From Perkinsela sp. CCAP 1560/9 (lineage: Eukaryota > Protista > Euglenozoa: Kinetoplastea): DNA of 64,000 bases. The stretch is taken from contig CBFFSA010000001.1 in NCBI GenBank assembly GCA_965644495.1, positions 682,001 through 746,000 on the forward strand, in the 5' to 3' direction. The position numbers and the translations under genes were made by a program. The notes below the pieces were generated by a model that made no database searches, was not told the origin of the DNA, and saw only the letters and a list, made by a program, of their open reading frames with translations. This document shows positions 7,065 to 56,171 of this stretch, piece by piece. Position 1 is the first letter of the stretch. Each line of letters opens with the position of its first letter.

Positions 7065-9638
7065 TTAAAAATACTTCGCTCTGATGCTCCTCAGAGCATC
7101 GAAAATTATACTGCTTTCATGATTTCCATTAAGTACACCATGGATTTCCTGCAACACTTCCCGTTGTACTGTTTCTGGTCTTCCTTTCATAGAATCGCAT
7201 GATTGAGGAATGTTAGAGGATGCTTGTTCCCCACGGAGATCACGCTCTTCTTTCTGTGTTAGAAGAGTTCTGGCTTCGGTAAGAACCTCTTCTGGAAAGC
7301 CTAGCGTGGCTGCCAGATCAAGTCCATAGTGTGATTTTGGGCATGATCCATCGACGAGTACATGAGTAAACCGTAATCCATTTGGGGTTGCATGTACAAC
7401 GAAGTGTTGTACTTGTACTTGATAATACAAATTGGCGAGTGATACGAGCTCGGTGTAATGTGTAGTCATAAGTGATAAAACTCGCTGTTCTGCAAGATAG
7501 GATGCAATAGCGAACGCTATGGCACCACCGTCGTGATGGTTCGTACTGCGCCCCACTTCATCAATAAGCACTAAACTAGATTGTGTGCTGCACTGCAGGA
7601 TATGTGCAATCTCTATCATTTCTTGCGCAAATGTGCTTGCATCGTTTTCAATACTATCATCACACCCCATGCGGGAGCAAATCCTGTCTGAATTCGGAAT
7701 AACTGCCTCTTCCGCGGGTAACATGCTTCCAATACAAGCGAGAACACAGAGCTGCCCTGCTTGCTGCAAGTAACATGTCTTTCCTGACATGTTCGCTCCG
7801 CAAATTAATGAAAATGATTTGTCGGCCAAAGACAAATTCACATCGTTGTATTGCACCTCTCTTCTGTTCATGGCGCCTATATGGGATACCATTGTGGGAG
7901 ATTTTCCTTTGCGAATTCGAAGCTCTTGTTTTTCAAATTGGGGACGGCATACAAGGATCCCCCAACCAACAGCAGCTTGAGCGAGTGAACAAAGAAAGTC
8001 GAGAAGTGAAAGAGCGTCTATCACTTTAAAAAGTATGGAGCTGTTTGCTCGTATTTCCTTGCTTATGTCTTCAGCAATCAAATCTGCAGCATTCACTATT
8101 TTCCGTGTAAGATTGTCACTGTACAGATTGTGCGACATCATCTCTCTCGTAGTACATGATATTCTTTTCTTCCTTCTGTGCTGTCGAAGAAAAACGTGAT
8201 CTGGCACTCTTGCGGCATCTAAAACTTCCAAAGACCAATGAAAACCATCATTTTGAGCGTGCGCTACTCGTAGGCTTGGTATTGAATACTTTTCCTGTAA
8301 ACGAGAGCACTCTTCAAGCATGCGAGTCATCACTACAGAAAATTCACGCCGTGCGTCATCCAATTCAGGATTCAAATTTTCACGTAAACAGAAGTAATTT
8401 TGAGCGCATCGAAACGTGCCGGATCCTTCCTCAGAGAACACGTTGTCCGTTTCAGATAATGTAGGTTCAAAAAAGTCGTCAAGTTTTTGGGAAAATTCTC
8501 GTAGATGTGTTGAATCGCAGGCTTGTCGTATATTGCTTAAAAGCTCATTCGCATCTACAGCACTAAGTAAGACTTTGCTAACCCGTTCTACAAGCATCAT
8601 CGACTTTCGAATTGCGTTGGTCCTGCCAAGTTTCTGTGATGTATACTTCCGGTCTGTATTCGTTGGTTGTAAAGTAAAGAACGCAACAAGGCGATCGAGA
8701 TCTTGCACATTATTCAGAATCGATACGACCTCGTTTCGCACAGCCTGTGTGTGCATCAAATATTGCACCGCTCCGGTGCGCAGCTCTAAGGTTCGAATGT
8801 CTACTATAGGTTGAACAATCGACGCATACAAAAATCTCCTGCCCATCTGTGTTCTTGTGTGATCGATAGCATCCGCAAGACATATCTCATCGGGATCTAC
8901 CGCAAGCTCATTGCTTTGCGAAAAGTTCTGCTTAGAGCGCGGACCAACGGAACGATTGCTAGTCGAAGTTTCTGCAATATTCGTGCGACGTTGGGGTAAT
9001 AACTGCAGAGCTTGCATTGTGCTGCGACTAAGCTCCATGTATTTCTCACGCCGATGATACTCAACACGCAACGTACCCGGAATAAATCGTATCTTGTGTA
9101 GCTCCGTAAGATAGCGCAACACAGCGGCTAGTGAAGCAAGGCACAAATATTTGTCCTTTGCATCGATATACACAGAGCTCTCAGGGGAGAGATAACACAG
9201 ACCGTCCGAGTCGCTAAATAACTTTCTAGCCACGGCAACAAATTCGACATCATGAAACCACACTCTCAAAGTGGTCAAGAAAGAACTCTCCACGCATGTC
9301 GAAGGTATAAGAATTTCTTGCACGGAGCATGCAGACAGCTGTTGCAGAGTTCCTGAGAATGAGGAGTCGTCCAGCATCTGTGTGATGACAAAATGCATAG
9401 TGCGTGTGTAGCATTTCGCCAAGCCTACTTCTCGTGCACGATTATAAATGAGTCCCACAACGCACGGGTCTTCGTTAATGTGTTTTTGAATTTCTACCAG
9501 TGGGGTGATCACGGAGGCATGTGTTCGCGGAGATGTAAGCAGTCCACTTTCATCAAGAACAGTTTTAATGCCGAAGTTCGTCGTATCCGAACGCGAGGAA
9601 GAAACGTTTCGATCTGAAAATATTGGATCATAGCCCAT
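7065..9638 (-). CDS. MSH4: MutS homolog 4 (meiosis-specific MutS-gamma)
   Basis: No mismatch-binding domain I; AREVGLA, Walker A GANMSGKT, ENDASTFAQEMIEIAHIL, Walker B LIDEVGRST, HYGL; first ATG at 9638 (track start is GTG). Confidence 0.85.
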   Translation of the reverse strand: MGYDPIFSDRNVSSSRSDTTNFGIKTVLDESGLLTSPRTHASVITPLVEIQKHINEDPCVVGLIYNRAREVGLAKCYTRTMHFVITQMLDDSSFSGTLQQLSACSVQEILIPSTCVESSFLTTLRVWFHDVEFVAVARKLFSDSDGLCYLSPESSVYIDAKDKYLCLASLAAVLRYLTELHKIRFIPGTLRVEYHRREKYMELSRSTMQALQLLPQRRTNIAETSTSNRSVGPRSKQNFSQSNELAVDPDEICLADAIDHTRTQMGRRFLYASIVQPIVDIRTLELRTGAVQYLMHTQAVRNEVVSILNNVQDLDRLVAFFTLQPTNTDRKYTSQKLGRTNAIRKSMMLVERVSKVLLSAVDANELLSNIRQACDSTHLREFSQKLDDFFEPTLSETDNVFSEEGSGTFRCAQNYFCLRENLNPELDDARREFSVVMTRMLEECSRLQEKYSIPSLRVAHAQNDGFHWSLEVLDAARVPDHVFLRQHRRKKRISCTTREMMSHNLYSDNLTRKIVNAADLIAEDISKEIRANSSILFKVIDALSLLDFLCSLAQAAVGWGILVCRPQFEKQELRIRKGKSPTMVSHIGAMNRREVQYNDVNLSLADKSFSLICGANMSGKTCYLQQAGQLCVLACIGSMLPAEEAVIPNSDRICSRMGCDDSIENDASTFAQEMIEIAHILQCSTQSSLVLIDEVGRSTNHHDGGAIAFAIASYLAEQRVLSLMTTHYTELVSLANLYYQVQVQHFVVHATPNGLRFTHVLVDGSCPKSHYGLDLAATLGFPEEVLTEARTLLTQKEERDLRGEQASSNIPQSCDSMKGRPETVQREVLQEIHGVLNGNHESSIIFDALRSIRAKYF

Positions 9639-9902
9639 TTCACAATTTTCCACGGAAATGAATAACTAAAGAATAACTAAATGACACTATACCAATGACA
9701 AAGGCACACAAGATCGTCCATAATCCTTTCGATGACTGTATTATCCCCATTTATGGCATTTTACAAAGACTCATCATTTTTTTCTCAGAAATATAAGAAT
9801 ATCGGTTTTACTGCGATACGTAGTGCACGTCTTTACTGTAAAGAGAAAATCAATTTTTTGAAGCGGGAGATTCTTTTTGCTGACCTATTGGTTAGAATTG
9901 GT

Positions 9903-23909: not shown

Positions 23910-24112
23910 GAGGTATACCTCTAGATAAGTAGTTTCCAGTGAAAACCGAATGTACAAAGTAAAGAATGCTGTGACTAAAATATATTTTTTTTCATAAAAA
24001 GAGTGTAACAAATCTTTTTTACAATGCATCTCAACAATCTACAGGCTACGCGTTGTGATCACTAAACGTATCAGCTCAGATAGATACAAGTATAAAGATA
24101 AATACAGGTATA

Positions 24113-25722
24113 AACCTAGGGACATGATAAGTCACCCCCCTCTAAAATTTGTGTAAAGTCTTCGTTTGGGCTAATTTTTGTTGCATTTTGCAGATCTCGA
24201 TGACGCTTGTTTGCGCATATCATATAGCGAATAAAACTGGGAACCAATAAAATATGAATTTAGTATTACCATTTTTTCACTTTTTCGCCACCATTTTTTT
24301 TGCAAACTTCCAGCTTTTAGTCGAAACTTAAAACAGTGCGGTCAAGCTCAGATTCACCAATATTCGCAAAAGCTTTCTTTACGCACTTAATTAGAGAAAT
24401 AGTACAAGACGGATTCATTTCATTTACACTTTGTTGAATCATTTCCCACACGTTCTCAATAGGATTAAGGTCGGGAGAATTAGCCGGCCAGTTTGTTATG
24501 TATTCAATTTTTGAAGTAAGAAGTTAGTTTTTCGTATTTTTGGCCTTATGTGCACCCGCCCCATCTTGCTGAAAAATAAATTTACGAGGAAAGGGAACCT
24601 TACGCAGCGTTTCTACATAAGTTTCACTTGTGATTGCACTGTTGGATGGTAGAACCACAAGGTAACGCCATCCAACTCCAATGGCACCGCACACATGACA
24701 TTTGGGCGCCCAACGCATTCTCTGCCTGGGAACGGCCTTTTCTCCTGGGGCAACCCACATCTTTTGTCGTTTATCATTCGTATCAAAAATCTTCTCATTA
24801 GAAAAAATTATTATCTTTGAATCACCACTCCAAGTGGAAGCAAAATCAACTCTTCTTTCCTTTTGGCGAGTACTTAAAGCCATAGTAATAGGTCGTGGGG
24901 AATACGTGTACTTCATAGCTACTAAGCCACGCCTTACGGTCTTTTTGCTAACGAAAATACCTTTTCTTTTCAATTTACCTGCTATCTTTCTAGCGCTGCT
25001 GTGTATGGGCACTCCAGCAATATCTTTAGGAGAAATACTACTGCCCCCCCCCCTACTACTATCCGCCTTCTGCCTTTTTACCCTGCGCCGACGACTTCTT
25101 CGCATGGGAATCTGCAAGGATCTGCTTCGAAACTACGAAGTTGTCTTCAACACTGCGGAATTGTGGCGCTGTTAGGGCTCGATGAAAATGAAATTTCTGA
25201 AAATCTCTTATAGAATGCTTACACTTTCGAAAACGAATGGAGCCATTTTTTCTAAAAAAACAAACATTTTTTCTTTTTCGAACGGTTTTTGAAAAGCTGA
25301 ATTTTCCGAAAATCGTTCGTTAAGGGTTAAACGAACTGAGTGTCCGTTCGTTGAGTCTTCAACGAACTGAGTGCCCGTTCGTTGAACATTCAAAGAACGT
25401 GCCCTGAACCCCAATTTTGATAGAAACATTGAAATCCCGTGCTAGTCGCTTCTTTGGAATACCCTCTTGAAAGCGCATATGCAACAAGACTTTTCCCATC
25501 TGCGTTAACCCCCCTTTTGGGAGACGGTACTTGGATTTCACCATGCAAAAAAAAATCGTGTCGGATTTAAAAAAAAAAAAGTTTTGTTCTAATACTTTGA
25601 AAGTGGCTAAAAACAGCGGGAACGTGTAGATCTCGAAATTGTGAACGACAAAGTGGTGTCATAAACCCCTTAGGCCCCTTCATGCAAAAAGTAAGGGGGT
25701 GACTTATTCGTGTCCCTAGGTT
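24113..25722 (-). mobile_element. Tc1-like transposon family A, copy 1 (DD35E), ~28-bp TIRs
   Basis: TA|AACCTAGGGACATGATAAGTCACCCCC vs GGGGGTGACTTATTCGTGTCCCTAGGTT|CA. Confidence 0.85.
24266..25544 (-). pseudogene. Tc1-like transposase with stops and insertion
   Basis: HTH (KKRLARDFNVS), FSNEKIF (first D mutated to N), FQQDGAGAH, in-frame TAA at 24524, WPANSPDLNPIENVW, ends GEKVKKW. Confidence 0.85.
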
Positions 25723-25994
25723 CAAAGATAATTGGACACCCTAAGGGTGGTGCAAGGATCGTTTGCACAGCGGTCTGTACTACCACGAAGTGACGGAAGC
25801 ACCCGACGGGCCCTCTACACGGGGCGGGGGGCACGAAAACTGTTACACCTGGCATATTAGGTTCATGCGGCCATTTTAGGATTCGCAAAAACATTAAAAT
25901 CCTTGTTTTCGGTGTCCAAAGAATCACCCTAGGCCGTTTACTTTTGTATTCAGAACACGATGTTAACACTGAGATCTGCAAACTGTAACCATAA

Positions 25995-27496
25995 TTCTTT
26001 CTTAGACGCTTCGTTAAACGCGGTGGTTGTTTTCAACTTACAAGCCACTCATGCTGCGCGTTTCGCGTTGAAAACTACCTCTACGTTTTACGAAGCGTCT
26101 AAAAAAGAAAGCTCACCAAAAGATCATGAATAATCTATTTTCTTTTTTTCGTGAAAAAGCCCGTTTTTTAGGGGAGAATTGCGAAATTTTCTCCCCAAAT
26201 TTGGGCCGTTTTTGATACCTTACCAGTAGTGGTAGGAAGCGAATCTGTTAAAAACACGTCGTAGAACGGTAGCTGAGGTCCCAAACACTTAAATCGATTT
26301 TGGAAAAATAATATTTTTACTTTGGTCAAAAATTCGTTTTTTTTGGTCACCCCGAAATTTTCGGAAATTTTCGAACTTGTCGGACCCCTCCGGCGCGTAC
26401 CAGGGGGGTCACCCCCGAATGTAGGGGGGCGGGGGTGAAAAATCATCACAGCGGCATACTCTACCACTTCCCTGCGCTGGATTTTGAAAAGCAAACAAAT
26501 CTAAAAAAAATCGTGATGTATGCCCCCCCCTGGACCCCCCATTTTTTCGATATTTTTGACAGTTTTGGACTACCGGGGGCCCCTTTAATTTTTTATTCTT
26601 CGATTATACACTGTATTACTGTGTTCCTCATTATACACCCCTTAAAGGATAGCAGTCCCCCGCCTTAATTTTCGTACAGGTGGAGTTGAGAGCTCATCTT
26701 TTTTTTAAGAATGTGCAAAATAAAAAAAATAGAGCGTTTCCCACTATTTTTAGCTCAGTTTAGTTCACATAAAACCAAACGCCGGGCTTAGGTCAAAAAT
26801 AAATTATATGGATTTTTGACAATTTTTTTCTCCAAAAATTGACAATTTTTTCGTGAAAGAAAATCTAAAGTGCGCCGAAACCGTCAATTTAGTGGCCTGC
26901 GTGATCCCCTATATTCTCTATTACCAGATGCATAAGCTTCAAATAATTCTTACAGATGTTTTCTACAGAATCTACAGAATGTTTTCTACAGAATCTGTAT
27001 ATTTTCGTAACTTTTCACTTATTTTCACAGTTTTTTTGTCAATTTCTAAAATTTTTGCCACTTTGCTTATGGAAAGTAAATTACTGCACTCCACAACAAT
27101 TTTTACGCGCATATCATAAGTAATAGGTCCATGGTGAAGGTTCCGGGGTCGAGAGAAATGTTTTGTCGTGGGTTAAAAAGATGAATATCGGGCATAAACT
27201 ATTTTTTAGGAAAAAATATGGTGTTTCGTCAAAATGACGATTTTTGACCAGTATTTTTAATCTCATTTTTTTTTATCTTGAGTTTTTTTACCCTGATTCC
27301 TTCGGCAAACATACGACAAATTTCGAGATCTATCGAATGCCGGAGGAATTAGGTCAAAACCTCGTACGACGCAAAAATGAGGGGGGGGGGGGGCTGCTAT
27401 CCTTTAAGGGGTGTATATTGTATTATATTTTCACTGTTTTTGTTCAATTGTTTCAATAATTGAGGGTAGAGCGGTAGTTATACAACCACCGCAATT
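25995..27496 (+). repeat. Hairpin-ended non-coding repeat family D, copy 1
   Basis: Shares blocks with 33946-34803, 35788-35963, 40630-41097 (inverted) and ~1135-1200 (inverted); subterminal inverted motif GCGGTGGTTGT/ACAACCACCGC. Confidence 0.7.
26636..27413. mobile_element. TA-flanked MITE (20-bp perfect TIR CACCCCTTAAAGGATAGCAG)
   Basis: Perfect TIRs with TA on both sides; paralogous empty sites at ~34715 and ~35890. Confidence 0.9.
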
Positions 27497-27746
27497 AGCC
27501 TAAACGTCCAGACGAACCAAAAATGACAGGTATAACAATTTTCTTGCCCCCCCCCGTGTTCCTTCCACAGTAATTTTATTGTGTCGTTCTCAAACAATCG
27601 CAGATTGCTTCATCTACTCGCACTCCTTTTGGAACAAACATTGGTGTCATGGAGTCGAAACTGTTTTCACGAAAATCGTATAAAAATATTTTGCCGGGCA
27701 ACAGGCCAAGATCAAGAATCCCAGTAAATTGATTCCCACGAAGTGT

Positions 27747-28292
27747 TTTATCATGCACTTATAGTGCAGAGATTAGCTCACCATGTCCTTATCCCGCATA
27801 AGACGGGTGGATCATGTGAGGTTTCGTCCTCGCCGGAGGTGTGCGGGTGCGGAGAGCTGGCGTCCCAGGTGCAGAGAGCCGGATGCGTAATCCCCATATT
27901 ACAGTTTCGGGGGCAATCCGGGTGCAGAGAGCTGCGACAGAGCCGAGGTGCGGAGAGCTGGGCGACCGCCAGGTGCAGAGAACCGAGTCTCGTCGGCGGA
28001 GGACACGTCTAGTGGTCCTCAAGGGAGGCCACCGTGACGCATGGCCCTCTCGGAGAGGAAAAAGACAAGTCGAAAAAAGCCGAGAGGGGGAAGCACACTC
28101 ACTCCAGGGGAGTGAGTCGGGGAGGGGTGAAGTGGTGAAAGCGCGTCCCCTGCTTCAGCGACAAGAGGGACAGTTCCGACCTTAGTGCCGGCCGGCAACG
28201 GGCATGAAAATACAGTAAGAGTATGCCCGTTGCCGGGGAAAGAAAGGATGAACTAAGGAAAAAGTACCAACAAGGTACAGAAACTGTATCTT
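27747..28292 (-). mobile_element. SL-headed, structured, GC-rich non-coding insertion (retroposon-like)
   Basis: Interrupts the LRR frame; several perfect hairpins; five GGTGCRGAGA(G/A)C repeats at 27846-27983; short A-run at the 3' end. Confidence 0.55.
28264..28290 (-). ncRNA. Spliced-leader (SL/mini-exon)-like sequence: 3' part of exon plus GTAC donor
   Basis: Minus strand GATACAGTTTCTGTACCTTGTTG|GTAC vs trypanosomatid SL GATACAGTTTCTGTACTATATTG|GTAC. Confidence 0.7.
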
Positions 28293-29425
28293 TAGAAGTG
28301 AAAGTCCTTCGGGTAATTTTTGAAGATCTACGCATCCAGAAAAGTTATTTAAATCTAGCCGCAGTATTTCAAGACTCTTTGGAAGACTATCCAGAGATAT
28401 ATTGCCACTAAGAAAATTACGTGACACGTTTAGCATGGTTAACGTTTGAGGTAAAGAAAAGAGTCGCAAAGACTCAGTAAATCGATTATTAAAGACAAAG
28501 ACTTTTTGAAGGTTTGGAGGAAGAAATTCAAACAACAAGGCTCCTTTAAATTGATTTTCCGATAAACGCAGTTCTGTTAGATCACAAGGGAGAGAACTGA
28601 GCACTACGCTTCCAGAAAAATCGTTACATGTGATATCTAAAGAGCGAAGAAACGGGGGTAAAGCACCCAAGTCAGCTTCCCCAGAAAAGTGATTGCCCTG
28701 AACAAAAAACTCAAGAAGTGCGTGTGAGACTGAAGCAAACGGGATGTTTCCTGAAAAGCAGTTGACTCGCACTTCAGATTGAAGTTTTAGGTGCTGAACC
28801 GTTTGAGGCATGGAAGACCACTTCAGTTCGCCGCCAAATCCAAGGCCGATCAAACTAATTTGGGTTATCACGCGCTGGGAATTGCACGTTATGCCTTTCC
28901 ACGTGCATCCTTCGTATGATGGATTCCACGAGGTATGCTTTGGTGTTACGTTGGTGAAAAAAGAGTACAGGCTGAATTCCAAGGGATGAAGTCCGGTGAT
29001 CTTACCTATCCTTGAGGGACGAAGATCCGACATTAAAAATTGAAACATCCAAAGTTTGATGCTGAAATTTAAGGTAAAACAACTACTACTCCTCTCAGTA
29101 ATTTTGTAAATGATTCTTTTGAGAAATTTATTTCCCCCCCCCCTTAAGCGCACCCGCTCACCCCCCCCCCCCGTTTAAGCGCACCTTCCACGGAAAACGA
29201 GGACCGCCCAAAAAAAGTTTCAGCTTTTTTCCGGTGTGAAATAAAACTTGGGAAAATACGCATGTATCGTTTGATTTGCGAGTAGCATTCTCACTGACCT
29301 AGAACTTTCGATAAATTGTCACAGAAAGTACGAGGAAATTTTCTTTGAGTTCGGTTGATTTTCCAACCACAGAGAAAGATGCCACCATGTCCGCCGCTCA
29401 GAAATACTATTTCTGAGATGATGTA

Positions 29426-30178
29426 CACTAGCAATCAGCTATTAGTCCCCCTTCGAAATTTGAAAAACTGGTATGTTTTTTATCATCTTTTTTTTGAACG
29501 TGTAGAGAATTTTACATAGGTGCGTTTCCCGCTGTTTAAAATGGTTTTTCTCGACTCATTAGGATCGAATTATTTTTTGAAAAAAAGGAGCCGAACAAAT
29601 GATTTTTTTAAAAAAATGTTCCATTTTTTGATATATTTGCCGGGTAAAACCCCATAAATACAATCACTGCAGGAAAAGAAGATAACGCAAAGACAAGCTT
29701 AATATCCAATATGTCACCCCCCGTTCTCCAACACCTTGTTCATACTTTTTAAATACTCTGAACACATTTATTTTTCCATCGTACATTTTTACCCATTTTT
29801 GTACCGTTTTTTTATTAATTTTATATGTTTTAGAGATGGAAGTGGTGGAAGCACCGCATTTTCGTTCAATAACAAACGAAATGCGCATTGCCAGCGTCGT
29901 ACGCTCCGAGTTGAGGTAACTCGCTCTGTGGTTCCTCACCATGGGTATAAAAAGAGTAGTGTCAATGACAAAAAAAGGGAAAATTTGACTGTACATTGGA
30001 AAATGTCATTTTTGAACAGTATTTTGAGTGCCAAAAGCGTATATTAAGTTCTTACAAAAAAAGAAGACCGGCAAAGATAGGCTAGGGATCGAGATCTCTC
30101 GTTTGCCGCAGGAATTAGGTCAAACGGACGAGCGACCGAAAAATAAAGGGGGGGGGGACTTATAGCTGAACGACAGTG
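29426..30178 (-). mobile_element. Internally deleted Tc1-like element (family C)
   Basis: TA|CACT..TCAGCTATTAGTCCCCC vs GGGGGACTTATAGCTGA..AGTG|TA; HTH remnant from ATG 29942 (STTSISKTYKINKKTVQKWVK). Confidence 0.7.
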
Positions 30179-30182
30179 TATA

Positions 30183-31005
30183 CTTACCCTCGGCTACAAG
30201 TATGCGTCAAGGCCTTTGGCTCAAGGACTGACGGAGGTTCAGAAAAAGAAAAGGGTGTTGTTTGCTATACATTGGGAAAAATTAAAGTGGGACACCTCTC
30301 GTTTAGTTTTTACAGATGAGAAACTGTTTGATACAAATGACCATCGAGAAAAAATGTGGGTAGCTCCTGGGAAAACGCCTGCAAAGCGGCAAAGAGTGCG
30401 TTGGGCACCCAAATGTCATGTATGGGGTGTCGTGGGAGTAGGTTATAGACACCTTGTTATTCTCCAATCGAACTCTATTACATGCGATTCGTACATCAAT
30501 ACATTAAAAAAAAGTACAATTCCCTCAAAACTGTATTTTTCAGCAAGATGGAGCAACACCACACACTGCCAAGGTAACAAAAGCGTATCTTCAGGAAACC
30601 AAAATGCAATTGTTAAATAATTGGCCACCCAACTCCCCCGATCTCTCCCCAATAGAAAACGTTTGGAGCACGGTTCAAAATCTTGTAGATGAATATAATC
30701 CTTCAACTAAGGAAAAGCTAATAAAAACTGTACGTAAAGCTTGGCTTAAATTACCCCAAAATTATATCGATGATTCGGTTCTGAGCTTCGATGCTCGCCT
30801 AAAGTCTTGTGTTGCGAACAAAGGAGAAAAGGTGAAAAAATGGTAATTATTGTTTCAACTATACGCATTGGTCTTTTTTGTTTCGTTTCTTCACGCGCAA
30901 AGTCTTTGTGTTGAGATCTGCAAAATACAACAAAAATCAGCTCAAAAGGACATTTTACTGAAAAAGTACTAAGGGGGGGGGGCGCCTTATTGGTGTCTAG
31001 AGTTT
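30183..31005 (+). mobile_element. Tc1-like family A, copy 2 (5'-truncated, frameshifted transposase plus right TIR)
   Basis: LVFTDEKLFDTND, RWAPKCHVWG, frameshift in the A-run near 30510, QQDGATPH..WPPNSPDLSPIENVW..GEKVKKW; homologous to 24266-24900. Confidence 0.85.
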
Positions 31006-31262
31006 ATAAAAACTATATTTTGTTACTATTTTTCTTAGTAAGTTTTGCTTACAGTATTGCTTGAAATGCCGACTCGACGCAATTAATTTTTAGCACTCCC
31101 GTTTTCTTGAAAGATTTCTCTCTATTTTTCTCATCATTATGCCCAACAAGCGTCGTGGTTTCACACTTCGTTGAAGTCGATGGGGAAGTCAGCCTACTTT
31201 AATTTCAGATGTGTTCCAGCCCAGACTCCTTATCTTCTTAGGTCGCCTTTCCTGCCGAAGTA

Positions 31263-32447
31263 CAGTGGTTTCAGTTGATATTGCCCCCCCTCGGAATTTT
31301 GATTTTTTTATCAATTTTTGCTCACCTTTGCAGCATTGGAGAGATCTCGTTCCCCTAGCGAAGAGCTTTGCCGCCTTTTTTTCATAGAGACCCCCTGGTG
31401 CCCCCTGGGTGACCCAAAAGTTGACCAAAATAAAAAAAATGACATTTTTTTACCTTATCAAAAATGGAACAAAAAACGGATTTTATGTCCAAAAGTTAAC
31501 TCTGAAGGAAAAGAACTAGTATCCGGAATGGCCTCCATTGTTTTGCAACACTTTTTGAAGTCTATTAGGGACTGAATCAATTGTGTTGTACACTTTACGT
31601 TTTTCTTGAGGATGTTTTAGAATCTGAAAAGCTTTTTTAATGGCATCGGCGAGGGTAGCATGATTGTGGGGCTTAATTTTTTTCTTTATGATACCGTTCA
31701 TTTGTTTCCAAACATTTTCTATTGGATTTAAATCAGGCGAATTCGCTGGCCAAGACAATTGTTAAATACGATATTTCGTATTCATCGTACGTTTCGTTTT
31801 CATCATCCACAATTTTTTTTACAAGGTCCTTAAACCGCCTTGATGATTTTTTTCCTGGGGATTTTTGGAGTGTAAGATCTTCTCTTTCCTTCCACAGGTT
31901 AACAATTCTTCTTATGGTGCGACGGTCACGTCCGAAATTATTAGATAATTTATGTATGCTTAATCCCTTTTTGTGTTGCTTTATTATTTCTTTTCTCTCG
32001 CAAAGAGGTAATGCCACGGTTCCTTTGTGGGATATTGGGGGATTGTCTTCTCTTTTGTCATTTCATCCTTGTACGTACTCCCCCTGTTTGGGGTTCGAGG
32101 GTGTGGTCTGCATAATGTAGAGGTGTTGACTATATTAAATTAGGCGATAGGGATGGTACTAGACATAGAGCTTTCAAATGCTCAATTTAGAACACTATTA
32201 CTCGTACTTACATGTTCAAAATGTACAAAAAATCGGGAAAATGTGACAAAAAATGGTTGTGTACACAGAAAACGTCCAAAAAAAACAGAGTTTTTCGGAC
32301 CCAGGGGGCACCAGGGGGTCTCTATGAAAAAAAGGCGGCAAAGCTCTTTGCTAGGGGAACGAGATCTCTCCAACGCTGCAAAGATGAGCAAAAATGGATA
32401 AAAAAAATCAAAATTCCGAGGGGGGGCAAGATCAACTGAAACCACTA
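31263..32447 (-). mobile_element. Tc1-like family B with ~150-bp TIRs and internally deleted transposase
   Basis: TA|CAGTGGTTTCAGTTGAT.. 31263-31410 vs 32299-32447; HTH (31770-32017) fused directly to WPANSPDLNPIENVW..GGHSGY (31516-31758). Confidence 0.9.
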
Positions 32448-33295
32448 TATAATGTGTAAATGTGAAATAGCGGGTAAGTGATTCTTCAAATTTCTTCAAA
32501 AGATTATGAATTTTGCAGATATTGAATCTTGCAGGCTCTGCGATGTGTTTTTGTGTTTTATCTTGCCATTGATTACGCCACGTCTAGGATCCAACGAGTG
32601 ATCTAACGGGAACTGGTTGAAGGACAACTCTAACGCGGTTTGCACGGTACAAGGAAAGAGCATTATGGGAAGAACTTGTTGTGAGCTATAGCTTCCCGTC
32701 TTTTTCCATTTCTGCACAAAAACTACAACTCTTTTCCCTTTTTTCTACGCGTCAGCGTATGCACACCACTTGCTCCACCTGACATCACGTGACCCCTCTA
32801 AGCCTGTACACCTTCATCGGCTCTCTCCTGCCCCGCGAAATTCCTCCAGGTCCATCGACGATCTGTCTGCCGCGCGCCTTTCTGGACATGAAACACTGAT
32901 AAACACCATATAGATTTCATAGTATAGTGTTTATAGTACTATAAACGAGGTTTATAGTACTATAAATTTTCTTGAAACACTGTAAACTATCTATAAATAG
33001 TTTTAGGGACCTCTGCAAAAAAAACAAGAAAAGAAATCAACGAAAAATCAAGAACCTTTTCCTGAATCTGTTTGGGCCATATTATTTTTACAGATTTTCT
33101 TTGTTTTCAACTTACATTTATAGTGCCGGTGAACCAAAAAAAATTGGCGCCGCTTTGCGGCGCCGGACTCTTCCCTTCAACTTTATGTGCGCTTAAACGG
33201 GGGGGTCTGACTGGGTGCACTTAAGGGGAGGGGGGACAGTATTTTTTGCATCCTATTTAATACATCCTTTCGAAATATGGAAAGGAGTGGTAATA

Positions 33296-33833
33296 AACTC
33301 CTGGCCACCAATAAGGCACCTCCCCCCTCATCTTTTGCACGAGGGAGCATGGCAGGGTTATGATACCATATTTTCGTTCAGATTTTTGAGATCTGTACGT
33401 TCCCGCCATTTTTAGTCGATTAAAACCTTGGAACAAAAAATATATAAAAAACTTTCCACTTCTGTTTTCCAGGAATGCGCAATTCTGTGATCAGGGGCAC
33501 GAGGGGTCTCCCTATGAAAAAATGGCAGCAATCACCTTCGTGAGGGAAGCGAGATCTCTCGTTTGCAACAAAAATGAGCAAAAACACATGAAAAAAGCTG
33601 AATTTCTCAGAGGGGGCAGAGTTTTTCGTCTAAAAGGGCGTACTTTTTTTTGAAAATTTTAAGAGGGTGAAAATGTAGTAATCAGACCTTCAAATGTATG
33701 CATTTTGGATTTTTTGTTCCGTTTCTTAACGCGCAAACTCTTTGTGTTGAGATCTATAAAATGCTACAAAAATTAAGTCAAACAAGCGACACATTGAGAT
33801 TTTGGAGGGGGTACCTTATTTTGGCCAGGGGTT
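33296..33833 (+). mobile_element. Non-autonomous derivative of family A containing a family B-like TIR fragment
   Basis: TA|AACTCCTGGCCACCAATAAGG vs CCTTATTTTGGCCAGGGGTT|TA; subterminal regions match 25610-25700 and 30875-30960; 33494-33620 resembles the family B TIR. Confidence 0.75.
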
Positions 33834-33945
33834 TATAATCGAGACGAAAATACGGAAAACTAAGTTTCGCACCGTTTTGTCGAACTAGATTCACAATCGC
33901 GACGGTACTTTGGGGTGGGCACTGCAGAGCGGAACGTTCCCCGGT

Positions 33946-34803
33946 AAGATCATGAATAATCCATTTTTGGGGGGAGAAAAATCTCGATTTTTCGGTGAAA
34001 ATTGCGAAATTTTGGCCGTTTTTGATGCCTTACCAGTAGGGGTAGGAGGCGCATCTGACGGAAAAAACGTCACAGAATGATAGCTGAGATGCCGAACTCA
34101 CTAGATACGTTTTAGGAGTCGATTCTGAAAAAAAATTATTTTTGTTTTTTTCCTGTCAAAAAAAAAATTTTGGTCATCCCAAAAGTTTCGGAAATTTTGA
34201 CCTTGTCGGACCCCTCTTGCGCGTACCAGGGGGGTTACCCCCAAATATGGGGGTGGAAAGTCATCGCCGCGGCATACTCTACCATTTCCTTGCGCTCGAT
34301 TTTGAAAATCAAGATTTTGAAAATTTCAGAAAATAACGCTTCAAAAACATGGACCTCCCCATGGAACCCCCATTGTTTTGAAGTTTTCAGTTTGGGACCA
34401 CCGGGGCCCCCTTTTATACTTTTTTCCTTTATTACAGTAAACATCACTATTCTCAGAATGCTCAGTTGTACGTTGACACAAAAAAAACGGCTTTTTTATC
34501 GTTTTTCGTCACTATTCTCAGAATTGGTCTGTTGAACAGGCACTTTTTCATGAAGTCAAATCATAATTCTCATTTAAAAAAAAAAAACGTTTTGCAAGAA
34601 AATTGTTAGCAACGGAGCAACTGGCCGCTTTGGGTTGTACGTTGACAGCCCAATTCTCATTTTTAGCGACTATCAGAATAGTGAAGTTTACTGTATATTA
34701 CTGTGTTCCTCTTATAATATTATTATTATATTTAATATTTATTTATATTTATTTTCACTGCTTTTGTTCACTTTTTTTTCAATAATCGAGGGTAGAGCGG
34801 TAG
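33946..34803 (+). repeat. Repeat family D, copy 2
   Basis: Colinear with 26120-26635 plus 27414-27478. Confidence 0.75.
34435..34693. mobile_element. TA-flanked MITE with CAGTAAAC termini
   Basis: TA|CAGTAAACATCACTATTCT vs AGAATAGTGAAGTTTACTG|TA; absent from other family D copies. Confidence 0.8.
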
Positions 34804-34950
34804 TGCCCGATTTAATGCCCGATTTGTGGCCCGATTTCGTGCCCGATATTGTTTCAGATGTGTTTACAAAAACAAATTAACAAAGGCGTACGAATCGAAT
34901 TGAGTGACAAATCATTAGTTTTTAAAACAATTTCGATGGGTACCCTACCC

Positions 34951-35643
34951 AGTAGCGTACTAGTTTACAGAGAAAATTTTCAGAATCTTTTCCTAAAAAA
35001 GTCAGTAATAATTTTTTTAAGAGCTGTGCACAGTTTCTGGCAGTTTCTGGCAGTTTCTGGCGGACTCTGACAGTTTTTGTAGGTACTCTGATAGTTTTTC
35101 GAGTGGAGAACTAGAGGGGGTGTACTAGGCTAAATATGGGAACCGCAGTGGGTACACTACTATTGTGACTGGTGATGAGACTTCCGTGTTGGGAGCCCAC
35201 AAGTGAGATAACCTAAGAAATCCGTGGCAAAAGAGGGTGAAGGTAAAGACCATGAAGGTTAAGGCATGTATCAAAGAAAAGGCCATGATAAGACTTGTAC
35301 GCAAGCCACCCAACCGAGGCAGCTCTATCCCTTTTTCTTGATTTTAATGCCTCACTTGGACAGCGTGCAACTCCGTCGAAAAAAATACATCCTTTACTAT
35401 CCTATACTATACATACTTTTTGCTTTTTTTGGGCTCAAAAAAAATTTTGGTCATCCCAGAAATTTCGAACACTTTCGGCGCGGTTGTATCATGCTAAAAA
35501 CAACTTTTGGCGCAAAGGTCGCTCGAACTTCTTCTAGTACGCTACTTATCCTAGTATGCTGCTTATCCTAGTACGTTACTTATCCTCAAACTGCCCATTT
35601 CGGAGACGGAATGCGGGATATCTAAGGGGGGGGGGGGTAAAGG
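34951..35643 (+). mobile_element. pogo-like family E, truncated copy
   Basis: Matches 38590-38670, 39910-40045 and 40320-40576, including the right TIR GATATCTAAGGGGGGGGTAA. Confidence 0.75.
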
Positions 35644-35787
35644 TACCTACACTTTATATATACACTTTGGTTTCATTTGATATTGCTTCACCGTGCCGGT
35701 AATACACCTACAAAGGCCAAAATTTACCTGGAAATGTGTGACACGCAAGGCAGTAGAGCAGGGAGGGGGCGCAAGGCAAAAAGGGAG

Positions 35788-35963
35788 AAGGCGGAGGGCC
35801 CCTCATTTTTTTGATTTTTTTCAGTTTGGACCACCGGGGCCCCCTTTTACATATTTTTCTTTTATTGTATATTACTGTGTTCCTGTTTATATTTTCTCCG
35901 TTTTTGCTCACTTTTCTTTTCAATAATCGAGGGTAGGGCGGTAGGTATACAACCACCGCAATA
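35788..35963 (+). repeat. Repeat family D, 3' part (copy 3)
   Basis: GGACCACCGGGGCCCCC..TATTACTGTGTTCCT..TCAATAATCGAGGGTAG..ACAACCACCGCAAT. Confidence 0.7.
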
Positions 35964-36028
35964 TTTTTTAATACCAGAATGTCACCTGATGGTCTTTTTC
36001 AGCGTTTGCGTGCACATGCCTAGAACAA

Positions 36029-53099: not shown

Positions 53100-56000
53100 T
53101 TAAGTATTTTGATCTTTTGACATTTTCTCAGATGAATCCCTTGTCTCGCGTTTGCGGTCTTTCGGCTTCCGAGATCGCATCTCCAATAGAGGATGAAGGT
53201 ATTCCTGATTCATCTTTTCCATTGTAAAAGTCTTGCTCTCCGTCCACATGTTGCGATAAATGGATATTCCTTCCAATGTTTCGTCGTCAATGTCCCAGGA
53301 TGATACCGTAACAGCAAAGAGTAGTCGACTCATAGTTTCCATTGCAGTACTGACGTAGGACTGAGCCGTGGTAACCCCCGATAAATGCTCAATAGCTCTT
53401 TTTTCATAAAACTCGCTCAAATCCTTGCTGTCGGACGCCAGAAATGTCAATAATCGGTATCTTCTCCACAAATGTCTCCGCCTCTTGATGCTTCCTAAAA
53501 GCCTGGCCCGTGGCCATGCTACTGTATACGTGTTCACTATTTCTTGCCATTTCGTGTTCGCTGGTGCGTTTCGAGGAATCGGAAGCAACTCGTCACAGAG
53601 AGCTGCGAGGGATTCAAGAAACACCCCAAACGCACTGGTATCAACCCAAACATGCTGAAAATAAAACCGATACCCAGACTTAAACACAGCTGTGTCATGT
53701 GACCGATCTTCCCACTTTCCATGACACTCCGTCACCGCGACCGTGACATCCACATTGGGGAAACACGCCGCTGTGTGGGTTAACAGCAACGCAGGAAATT
53801 TCGTATCCTGCAGATGTACCTTCCGTGCCACCGTGGAACGAAAATCGACATCCACATAGAGTCGAAACAGCTCCGAGCGCACCTCCTCGACACAGAATGG
53901 TGTCTGGTCAGCGTGTCGTATGGCACTCTCCCACTGCAGGAGATACGAACCTAATTTATTTTTTGGGATATGATACATCGCCCCTCGTTGTGACACGTGC
54001 GTGGGTTGAGGCCTTGCGAGTTCCAGCACGGTGTTCTCAGCCATCCACTTCTCTAGACCATCACGCGGCCAATAACTCTCTGGAGCTTTTTTCGAGGTCC
54101 CGGGGAGAGTTTCCAGGACCATGGGAGGGGGAAGCTCCGGTTCCGGGGGAAAGTCTTCTAAGTTGTCCACGGAGGGAACTGTGACAAGGGGAGAGGCGGT
54201 GACCGAGGAAGGAGAGGATTGTGATAATGCGCCAAGAGCTACGGAATGGATTATGTTACAGCATTGATGGCTGCTCTCACGATACACCAGATGAAGGTGC
54301 GTGACCTCAAAGATAAGAGGGACCCAATTCGCGAATAGCTCGGCGCGAACACGCTCGGCCTCCTCAGGGGGGTATTGACCAATGGAGAGTAGCGCGGGGC
54401 TGTGGTCGACAGTACACATGGAGTAGGCCCAGAGCAGAAGCTCACGTAATTTGTGGACCGCGGCCTCAAAGGGGGGCAGGGGTTCCAGTTTCAACCCTAC
54501 GGTGGTACGCCCGAAATTTGCCTTGGAGTCAAAGTTGTGAAGCCGCGCGCGAAAAGGAGGACAGCGGGCGGCGATGGATGAAAGAGCTTTCATAACAACG
54601 GGGAGCTGTTCGCCTTGTAAAGATATAAAAGGATGGCAGATCTTTATATGGGGCATCCAACGAGGATAATAAGGATCACCATTAAGTCTCAGTTTGTCTA
54701 TAGATTTCCACGTTCCCACGGGTGGCAAAATGACAACCGCGGTATTTGAATCCAGTTGGACTGGGCGCACAAAGGGCTGGAAAGATTCTTCCATGTGTAT
54801 TACAGATCGTACAGCATAGTGACTACTCAGGAATAACCCACTTGCATCCGGAGTTCTTGCTACAATCTGGGTTTCCGTAGGAATCAGCAGACCACGCACC
54901 ATTATACGATCCAGACGGCGTGATTCCTTTCGTGGTCCACATGACAAATGTGACAGTGGGTTATTTTCATAGTCAAAGGTAACACCTGCCTCGCTTCCTC
55001 GGAGAGTCTTCCAGCTGTCCAGAAAAGCGGCTAAAGGCTCCGACGTTGTCTCAGTATCTGCGTCACCAAAGTTAAAATCGCCGAGAAGAATCTGATCAGT
55101 GCCATCTGTAAAGGTTTTGCATATTGCAGCTAACTCTTCGACACGTCTTGAGCTGGATTCGCGGGCAAAATCACTAATTAACTGAATGTTTGCTATTGAA
55201 AGCGTGCGGTTCTTCTGGGATTCCAATACTATGAATACAGCATGCTTTTGGGGTGAGAGACGAAGTACTTGAGCGTTCGAAATTTTGAGCCTAGAGAGAA
55301 TAACTTGCCCGATAGCAACGTCAGAAGGTAAATATGTCAGAGAATACTGAGATATCAAGGGTTCATAATCCGATAAAGCCTTCCAAAACTTGGGCGTAAT
55401 TTCCTGAAGCGCAATGATATCACAGTTGCTTAAAGCCAGAAACTTAAGTTGTAAAGGGAGTCGCTCTTCGCTCCTACGCAAATTATTTTCATCAAAGAGA
55501 TCACACAAAACATTCCAACTTAACAACGAAAGCGAACTTTTACTGAGGCATCTGTTTTGAGGGCACGTCAACATTTGCAATGACTCTACTAATGGATATC
55601 CTCCATGAGTCTTAAATGGGCGCGATAGATGAATATTTTGGAAACTTTGTGGCTTCGAAACTGTAGCGGAATTTTCGACTGATTTATCTTTCGATGTCAT
55701 AAATATTTCATCTGCGAATGGCGCGCCAGAGCTTAGTTGTGCACTTTCTGTTGCCAAAGGTATGGAATTCGACGCGGTTATGTTTAAAGGCTTTTCGAAA
55801 GGGTTTTTCTTTCCTGTGCTTTGAGTTGATTTCGGCCGCATGGGAATCTGGCTTTTGTGTTGGTCCACGGAAAACCGAAATGTTTGGCATATCACAAAAA
55901 GCATGCATTCCCCAGGAAGAATGTCGCTAAGCACATCGTTGCATCGCAAGTAGCATTCCTCAAGATGGGGATCAATGTCTAGATGAATTGAGATCGTATG

Positions 56001-56171
56001 GTGTGGATATTCGTCAGGAACTTGGAAAGATAACTTCACTCCCTGGTACACAGTAGTAAACAGTCGGCTTTCTTCTAGAAAAAACGCTTCTTGATCAGAC
56101 CCCAATGAAGTAGAAACAAGAGAAAGCTCTTCCCGTAAACGGTCGTGGTCGATCTCAGAAAAGGAATCCAT
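53100..56171 (-). CDS. Multidomain RWD-like / EEP nuclease-phosphatase / 2H phosphoesterase / AEP primase-like protein
   Basis: VPDEYP (RWD); SWNVL, IALQEI, LGDFN, RLDRI, SSHYAV (EEP); RWMPHIKICHPF (2H/LENG9-like); FRLYVDVDF..KSGYRFYF (AEP-like). Confidence 0.8.
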   Translation of the reverse strand: MDSFSEIDHDRLREELSLVSTSLGSDQEAFFLEESRLFTTVYQGVKLSFQVPDEYPHHTISIHLDIDPHLEECYLRCNDVLSDILPGECMLFVICQTFRFSVDQHKSQIPMRPKSTQSTGKKNPFEKPLNITASNSIPLATESAQLSSGAPFADEIFMTSKDKSVENSATVSKPQSFQNIHLSRPFKTHGGYPLVESLQMLTCPQNRCLSKSSLSLLSWNVLCDLFDENNLRRSEERLPLQLKFLALSNCDIIALQEITPKFWKALSDYEPLISQYSLTYLPSDVAIGQVILSRLKISNAQVLRLSPQKHAVFIVLESQKNRTLSIANIQLISDFARESSSRRVEELAAICKTFTDGTDQILLGDFNFGDADTETTSEPLAAFLDSWKTLRGSEAGVTFDYENNPLSHLSCGPRKESRRLDRIMVRGLLIPTETQIVARTPDASGLFLSSHYAVRSVIHMEESFQPFVRPVQLDSNTAVVILPPVGTWKSIDKLRLNGDPYYPRWMPHIKICHPFISLQGEQLPVVMKALSSIAARCPPFRARLHNFDSKANFGRTTVGLKLEPLPPFEAAVHKLRELLLWAYSMCTVDHSPALLSIGQYPPEEAERVRAELFANWVPLIFEVTHLHLVYRESSHQCCNIIHSVALGALSQSSPSSVTASPLVTVPSVDNLEDFPPEPELPPPMVLETLPGTSKKAPESYWPRDGLEKWMAENTVLELARPQPTHVSQRGAMYHIPKNKLGSYLLQWESAIRHADQTPFCVEEVRSELFRLYVDVDFRSTVARKVHLQDTKFPALLLTHTAACFPNVDVTVAVTECHGKWEDRSHDTAVFKSGYRFYFQHVWVDTSAFGVFLESLAALCDELLPIPRNAPANTKWQEIVNTYTVAWPRARLLGSIKRRRHLWRRYRLLTFLASDSKDLSEFYEKRAIEHLSGVTTAQSYVSTAMETMSRLLFAVTVSSWDIDDETLEGISIYRNMWTESKTFTMEKMNQEYLHPLLEMRSRKPKDRKRETRDSSEKMSKDQNT

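Follow-up and report, generated by a model that had tools for sequence, protein, structure and literature searches.

Among the site-specific elements that encode a restriction-like endonuclease (RLE), R2 occupies 28S rDNA, CRE1/2, SLACS and CZAR occupy spliced leader (SL) genes, and NeSL belongs to the same group; CRE elements are site-specific and target SL genes (PMC12278014). Trypanosomatid retroposons carry the Pr77 promoter and produce unspliced transcripts (PMC1874656, PMC8190864). In dinoflagellates, genomic copies of retrogenes begin with a relict SL and come from reverse-transcribed trans-spliced RNAs (PMC6050394, PMC5585692). The locus described here lies in a stretch of 64,000 nucleotides from Perkinsela sp. 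CCAP 1560/9 (contig CBFFSA010000001.1, positions 682,001 to 746,000, forward strand), referred to as the window. On its minus strand a leucine-rich repeat (LRR) gene is interrupted, in frame, by a structured, GC-rich insert of 549 bp (27744-28292). This insert is very probably a young, non-coding retroposon copy, similar to a short interspersed nuclear element (SINE), that was derived from a trans-spliced RNA.

The bounds of the insert were set by comparing copies of its family; about 3 bp of the target are replaced, and the ends are ambiguous by 1-3 nt. Read on the minus strand, the insert runs through an SL relic, GTAC, a pyrimidine tract, AG, several hairpins, a T6 tract, GC-rich units and an A-rich end, GATAAAACA. 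Its G+C content is 52-65%, against roughly 36-42% in the surroundings, and its RNA is predicted to fold at -196.4 kcal/mol (z = -4.5 against dinucleotide shuffles). The structural features listed in the first-pass annotation, which was made from the letters of the window, were all found: a 14-bp perfect stem (arms 28192-28205 and 28223-28236, hairpin 28192-28236), a 7-bp outer stem that appears in the minimum-free-energy fold, a further hairpin ACTCACTCC/GGAGTGAGT (28097-28117), the T-tract and the A end. Its five GC-rich repeats are present as well, as 17-nt units (27843-27985) found by repeat search, and they contain CTCTGCAC, the core of the tail motif. The 3' tail itself (27744-27774) consists of AATCTCTG, a TGCAC/GTGCA hairpin and ATGATAAAACA, and was delimited by motif matches in the genome and by a match to a long interspersed nuclear element (LINE) described below. 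A scan of the insert region for a known RNA class with Rfam gave chance-level matches only, and ARAGORN found no tRNA-like head in the insert. The tRNA, 7SL or 5S head with an RNA polymerase III promoter that defines a classical SINE was therefore not found with these two tools, and the internal T6 tract argues against transcription by RNA polymerase III.

The head of the insert, AAGATACAGTTTCTGTACCTTGTTG followed by GTAC (28292-28264), had been recognised earlier as an SL core with a GT in register. This is borne out, and the match can be made more specific: positions 28268-28292 are the 25 nt with which the SL exon of this organism ends, identical to the exon's 3' part at G000:C1:661317 and 661614. 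At these two positions, 21 kb upstream of the window, are two tandem units 297 bp apart, in each of which a full exon precedes GTATGAGAAGC..., two stem-loops and a T-tract, and a 5S rRNA gene adjoins them (99 bits; L051:2227-2345). Judged by this organisation, the two units are the genuine SL RNA genes. The 3' part of this organism's SL was not found in the searched literature.

One proposal made for the insert was that it is an orphon, a displaced SL RNA gene, and a related one that it is a mobile unit whose own SL donor works in trans and could rewire the trans-splicing of neighbouring genes. The SL 3' part followed by GT in register is what would be seen at the start of either. However, the insert has only 25 of about 38 exon nucleotides, a promoter is absent, and so is the context of an SL RNA intron, stem-loops and T-tract terminator. 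The SL intron, GTATGAGAAGC..., and the insert are alike only at GTA, with an alignment score of 14 compared with 14.5 +/- 2.2 for shuffles, so nothing resembling an SL RNA intron follows the GT, and one subfamily of the element has no GT at all. The insert lies within an LRR open reading frame (ORF) and not in an SL/5S tandem array, and the Rfam and ARAGORN searches gave this idea nothing. The chance that it is an orphon or a working donor is close to negligible. The SL relic and its GT are better read as a fossil of an RNA intermediate than as a working splice donor.

The genome searched comprises 21 Mb, and 70 copies were examined in sequence. With the 546-bp insert as query, 48 scored matches were obtained among 262 candidates, which makes the insert a member of a multi-copy family, here called family A. 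The 3' end of family A is constant, ...CTCTGCACTATAAGTGCATGATAAAAC plus 1-2 variable bases, and the tail motif has 51 genomic matches at no more than 1 mismatch. The 5' ends vary: some lie inside the SL and others deeper, at positions 179, 190, 194 and 260. Dispersed copies with a constant 3' end and variable 5' truncation are the pattern of a non-LTR retroposon. Indels aside, the window copy shares 99.5% identity with L002, its nearest relative, and 98-99% with a dozen others, which suggests that it is young. One 28-bp repeat unit, present in most copies, is missing from it.

A further 40 sites at which the SL is followed by GTA were examined, and these belong mainly to three sister families, B1, B2 and B3. 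The sister families match family A over the first 215-290 nt, that is, over the SL and the hairpin head, and differ in their 3' halves, although their tails follow the same design of TCTCTG, a hairpin, and ATGA with a short A-rich end. The helices of the head are kept across 21 copies drawn from all families, with compensatory changes at three pairs, a modest amount of covariation. The 14-bp stem is kept in all families and one of its pairs changes from C:G to A:U (15 versus 6 sequences); in the ACTCACTCC/GGAGTGAGT hairpin, one pair varies between A:U (8 sequences) and G:C (7). The consensus fold of these 21 copies joins the SL core ACAGUUUC to GGAACUGU, a conserved internal segment. In the window copy the corresponding segment is GGAACTGT (28170-28177), the complement of the SL core ACAGTTTC, and both the consensus fold and the single-sequence fold predict an 8-bp long-range helix between the two. 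Elements are also found in head-to-tail stacks, where the tail of one directly abuts the SL of the next (L004, L006, L012, L082 and L100/L101), which suggests template switching or repeated use of one landing site.

The junction between the SL and the body carries the information about how the head arose. In one subfamily (L010, L017, L018 and L019) exactly 15 nt are missing, and the last G of the SL joins the base that follows the pyrimidine-tract AG. The missing segment, GTAC plus pyrimidine tract plus AG, occupies 28253-28267 in the window copy, and would be an internal trans-splice acceptor: the short form is what renewed trans-splicing of a long-form transcript at that AG would produce. 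An SL exon that meets the body directly at an acceptor, with no intron between them, is the hallmark of a retrocopy of a trans-spliced RNA, and it is seen here in the DNA copies. The length of the SL relic differs among copies, with 4-19 nt kept upstream of TGTACC (about 16-31 nt of SL), and a more distant relative, L058, has a full SL before the same head. At the 5' junctions of L003, L009 and L083, fragments of the SL are duplicated, which fits slippage of a reverse transcriptase (RT) on its template. Of the three origins that the first-pass annotation had offered for the insert, a retro-copied trans-spliced non-coding RNA or SINE is thus the one that agrees with the evidence, namely multiple copies, a constant 3' end, 5' truncation, a tail in common with a LINE and an isoform made with an alternative acceptor.

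The interrupted LRR gene continues on both sides of the insert. Its upstream part (28293-29153, minus strand; Pfam LRRNT_2 and LRR) ends at codon 8, a leucine, of an LPxxLxxL unit, and its downstream part (27576-27743, minus strand) runs from LRGNQFTG... to the stop codon. Translated separately, the flanks read ...LPEGLSLL and TLRGNQFTG... and together make one regular 23-residue LRR unit like its neighbours. The earlier statement that deletion of the insert restores the LRR frame therefore holds; the 546 nt given there for the insert are a multiple of 3. The reading frame that enters the insert from upstream stops at 28182-28184, and so this copy of the gene is, by its translation, truncated. 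A candidate target-site duplication, the 6-bp CACTTC, was rejected since with it the LRR unit would have only 20 residues.

Frame restoration also raises the possibility of an introner, an insert that is spliced out of the LRR pre-mRNA and leaves the gene functional. The insert is in sense orientation, its length is a multiple of 3, and a GT at 28267 and an AG at 27758 would bound 510 nt. That GT...AG pair would however leave 36 foreign nucleotides in the message, and the boundaries that do restore the LRR unit are not GT...AG but read AA(G)...AA(A)/ACA. Variable 5' truncation and stutter would destroy the donor in other copies, about 60% of the sampled copies are outside genes, and cis-splicing is very rare in kinetoplastids. 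An introner is therefore very improbable.

The same flanks bear on the proposal that the insert is the 5' junction of a retroposon of the CRE/SLACS/CZAR type in an SL gene. The partner LINEs described below are of the RLE type, as CRE elements are, but on both sides the insert is flanked by LRR coding sequence and not by an SL gene. Moreover, the SL piece is the 3' part of the exon instead of a duplicate of the exon around nt 11/12, and the window has no RT ORF next to the insert. Such a junction can be set aside with hardly any reservation.

The LRR unit is itself a preferred target. Of 30 family-A loci, 14 fall within LRR coding sequence, as do about 14 of the 40 loci of family B and the LINE with the matching tail, all of them in sense orientation. 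At the 5' side, at least 13 copies have codon 8 of LPxxLxxL immediately before the SL relic, despite the varying length of the relic. At the 3' side, the Asn codon of NxFxG lies no more than 12 nt after the tail in 17 copies, and the target resumes 8-12 nt before that codon; the target therefore loses 0-4 bp and gains no duplication. Nearly identical elements stand between strongly divergent flanks, which marks the copies as separate insertions. With at least 1359 candidate members in the genome, the LRR family is estimated to make up about 6% of it, and an occupancy of about 40%, on one strand and in one register, is therefore far from chance. Near the site, conservation of the DNA is highest at GATCT (Asp-Leu) with CTNCC (Leu-Pro), 20-40 nt upstream, which is a putative recognition site; a conserved GTAGATCT lies about 35 nt upstream of the junction. 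Insertion that is specific for site and orientation is also a property of the RLE-type LINEs to which the partner seems to belong. Neither the LRR target nor the partner LINE had been noticed in the first-pass annotation.

A first look at the genome gave 1072 candidates for RT (PF00078), and many of the RT frames are open for 1000-2800 residues. RT-encoding LINEs with an SL head were found, two of them with a 3' end that matches one of the SINE-like families. The LINEs are about 4.5-5.5 kb long and match RVT_1 and zf-RVT in Pfam; they have no Pfam match to the domain of the apurinic/apyrimidinic endonuclease (APE) type (Exo_endo_phos). Among solved structures, the ORF2 products of L077 and L074 match Bombyx R2 (8gh6) with E values of 2e-32 and 4e-27. 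For L077 it is the best solved relative and the alignment extends past the RT, while for L074 the match is confined to the RT region. Read by eye, RH(N/D) and RPD...ELT...K occur at the C-terminus in 4 of 4 elements, and CCHC in 3 of 4. The combination of RT, CCHC and C-terminal PD-(D/E)xK motifs with no APE domain is that of an R2/CRE-type (RLE) LINE. In a search by sequence, the only close neighbours of a LINE were paralogues from this genome, and the nearest database relatives from elsewhere are about 25% identical.

The link between these LINEs and the SINE-like families is the 3' end, since a tail in common with an RT-encoding element is what marks the non-autonomous partner of a LINE. 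The 3' terminal hairpin of an SL-headed LINE at G000:C1:3742185-3747220 matches the family A tail at 26 of 28 nt, and this LINE is itself located in an LRR site. In the case of L074, the 3' untranslated region of the LINE is the 3' half of family B3. Family A was probably placed by the enzymes of a related R2-like retrotransposon.

Taken together, these observations suggest a cycle. The element RNA would be made by read-through transcription, presumably still today, like other RNA polymerase II transcripts in a kinetoplastid-type cell, and trans-splicing would then add the SL, which would become the 5' end of the RNA. An RT supplied in trans may recognise the terminal hairpin tail that the element has in common with the SL-headed LINEs. 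Copying would be primed on the nicked target, by target-primed reverse transcription, at the fixed position seen in the DNA of the 23-residue LRR unit. It would usually stop or slip inside the SL, leaving the variable relic, which in the window copy is 25 nt long.

Several observations weigh against parts of this account. Family A and the LINE at C1:3742185-3747220 have only 28 nt in common, so the partnership is a putative one, drawn from a comparison of sequences. The C-terminal 475 residues of this LINE had no match among solved structures, and its assignment to the RLE type rests on the motifs read by eye. Almost every SINE copy retains no more than 16-31 nt of SL. Over half of the SL cores in the genome, by contrast, extend to at least 35 nt of SL, and simple random 5' truncation does not account for the short relics. 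Lastly, a search of the assembly for bodies preceded by a base other than T found no element body without a preceding SL. Such an SL-less source locus, which would show how the SL-GTAC junction of the long isoform arose, is thus absent from the assembly.

The absence of a source locus also favours the alternative that the head descends from an SL RNA gene, exon and first intron bases included, for example from an ancestor that inserted inside an SL intron and was driven by the SL promoter, the SL then being carried along as DNA. In all SINE families GTA(C) stands right after the SL, where the real gene has GTA(T), and a small GTACC/GGTAC hairpin spans the junction as in SL RNA. On the other hand, the similarity to the SL intron ends after 3 nt, and SL promoter sequence is upstream of none of the sampled copies. 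The sole SINE copy with a full SL, L058, is in an LRR site and has the TCTTT start typical of retrocopies. The short isoform requires a fresh trans-splicing event, and the LINEs and many unrelated units are SL-headed too. Descent from an SL gene is therefore considered unlikely, and a retrocopy of a trans-spliced RNA remains the preferred explanation.

Compared with the site-specific RLE elements, the elements described here are alike in the order of RT, CCHC and PD-(D/E)xK in the partner LINEs, and in the use of one target position in one orientation within a multi-copy target, with small deletions and no duplication. They are unlike them in that the target is a protein-coding LRR unit and not an RNA gene, and in that the copies bear a trans-spliced SL at the 5' end. 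UnaL2 and UnaSINE1 are a stringent LINE/SINE pair with a common 3' stem-loop. The elements here likewise have a short common 3' hairpin tail, a non-coding passenger and 5' truncation, whereas the head is an SL with structured RNA and not a tRNA, 7SL or 5S head of the RNA polymerase III kind.

A second parallel is found in trypanosomes. RIME and ingi were reportedly described by Bringaud et al. in 2002 as insertions in the RHS (retrotransposon hot spot) multigene family of Trypanosoma brucei. The likeness includes one fixed in-frame position, a large dispensable gene family and many pseudogenes. Unlike the elements here, ingi and RIME depend on an APE endonuclease, and their insertion duplicates the target site. 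Transcription of ingi and RIME starts from the internal Pr77 promoter and gives unspliced RNAs (PMC1874656), which therefore carry no SL relic. With the SL retrogenes of dinoflagellates the elements share an SL at the start of genomic copies of processed trans-spliced RNAs, and differ in being retrotransposons with a SINE-like passenger, a partner LINE and a specific target, in a kinetoplastid-type genome. The combination of SL-headed LINEs and SINEs with LRR targeting was not described for kinetoplastids in the searched literature.

A broader reading can be put forward tentatively, as a possibility that we would not yet favour. The RLE LINEs and their SINE-like passengers may form a guild of promoter-less retroelements that live off polycistronic transcription, with trans-splicing supplying the cap and a defined 5' end. 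The SL core would have been built into the fold of the passenger RNA through its conserved internal complement, and the endonuclease would have switched its target from RNA genes to a single codon boundary in the LRR. The LRR family, with more than 1000 members, would then be a renewable safe haven that is continually truncated and reshuffled.

The locus matters for several questions beyond the window. It shows how promoter-less retroelements could persist under polycistronic transcription, since trans-splicing makes their 5' ends, and the SL relic may serve as a built-in marker of RNA-derived insertions, as DinoSL does in dinoflagellates. A codon-precise, protein-coding target would be added to the known targets of site-specific RLE elements (rDNA, SL genes and microsatellites). 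Large gene families of the contingency type may repeatedly become landing pads, with the RHS hot spot of African trypanosomes as a parallel. In practical terms, the element family accounts for many broken LRR genes in the assembly, and masking it before gene calling is advisable.

SL sequence is not confined to these elements. The genome holds 533 occurrences of the SL core 12-mer, compared with 5 of a reversed control, and a near-full SL of 35 nt occurs 305 times, dispersed, each time before a different 5' untranslated region and an ATG or ORF. These dispersed SL heads are most simply read as large-scale retroposition of trans-spliced RNAs, as in dinoflagellates. At the first 100 listed full-SL sites, position 2 of the SL is T in about two thirds and A in about a quarter; it is A in both SL RNA genes read. 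The T may be an error of reverse transcription at a modified cap-proximal base, a footprint of cap-4. Two loci, L053 (G000:C2:801576) and L060 (G000:C25:23940), appear to be retro-pseudogenes of the SL RNA itself: they have the exon and the intron up to the last stem-loop, and then an A-rich tail in place of the T-tract. SL/5S linkage in bodonid SL arrays is cited in the reference list of one paper (PMC2621209), and the arrangement of the SL and 5S genes here fits linkage of the bodonid type.

In the window, the LRR gene and the insert sit in a gap between long ORFs (24000-36000), within an otherwise minus-strand run of genes. A MutS-family protein is encoded at 7065-9653 (minus strand), and the closest others among 5.8 billion proteins are only 27-31% identical to it, a distance that points to poor sampling of the lineage. 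Further along, at 53100-56171 (minus strand), a 1023-residue ORF combines endonuclease/exonuclease/phosphatase, 2'-5' RNA ligase-like and PrimPol (PPL4/AEP) domains.
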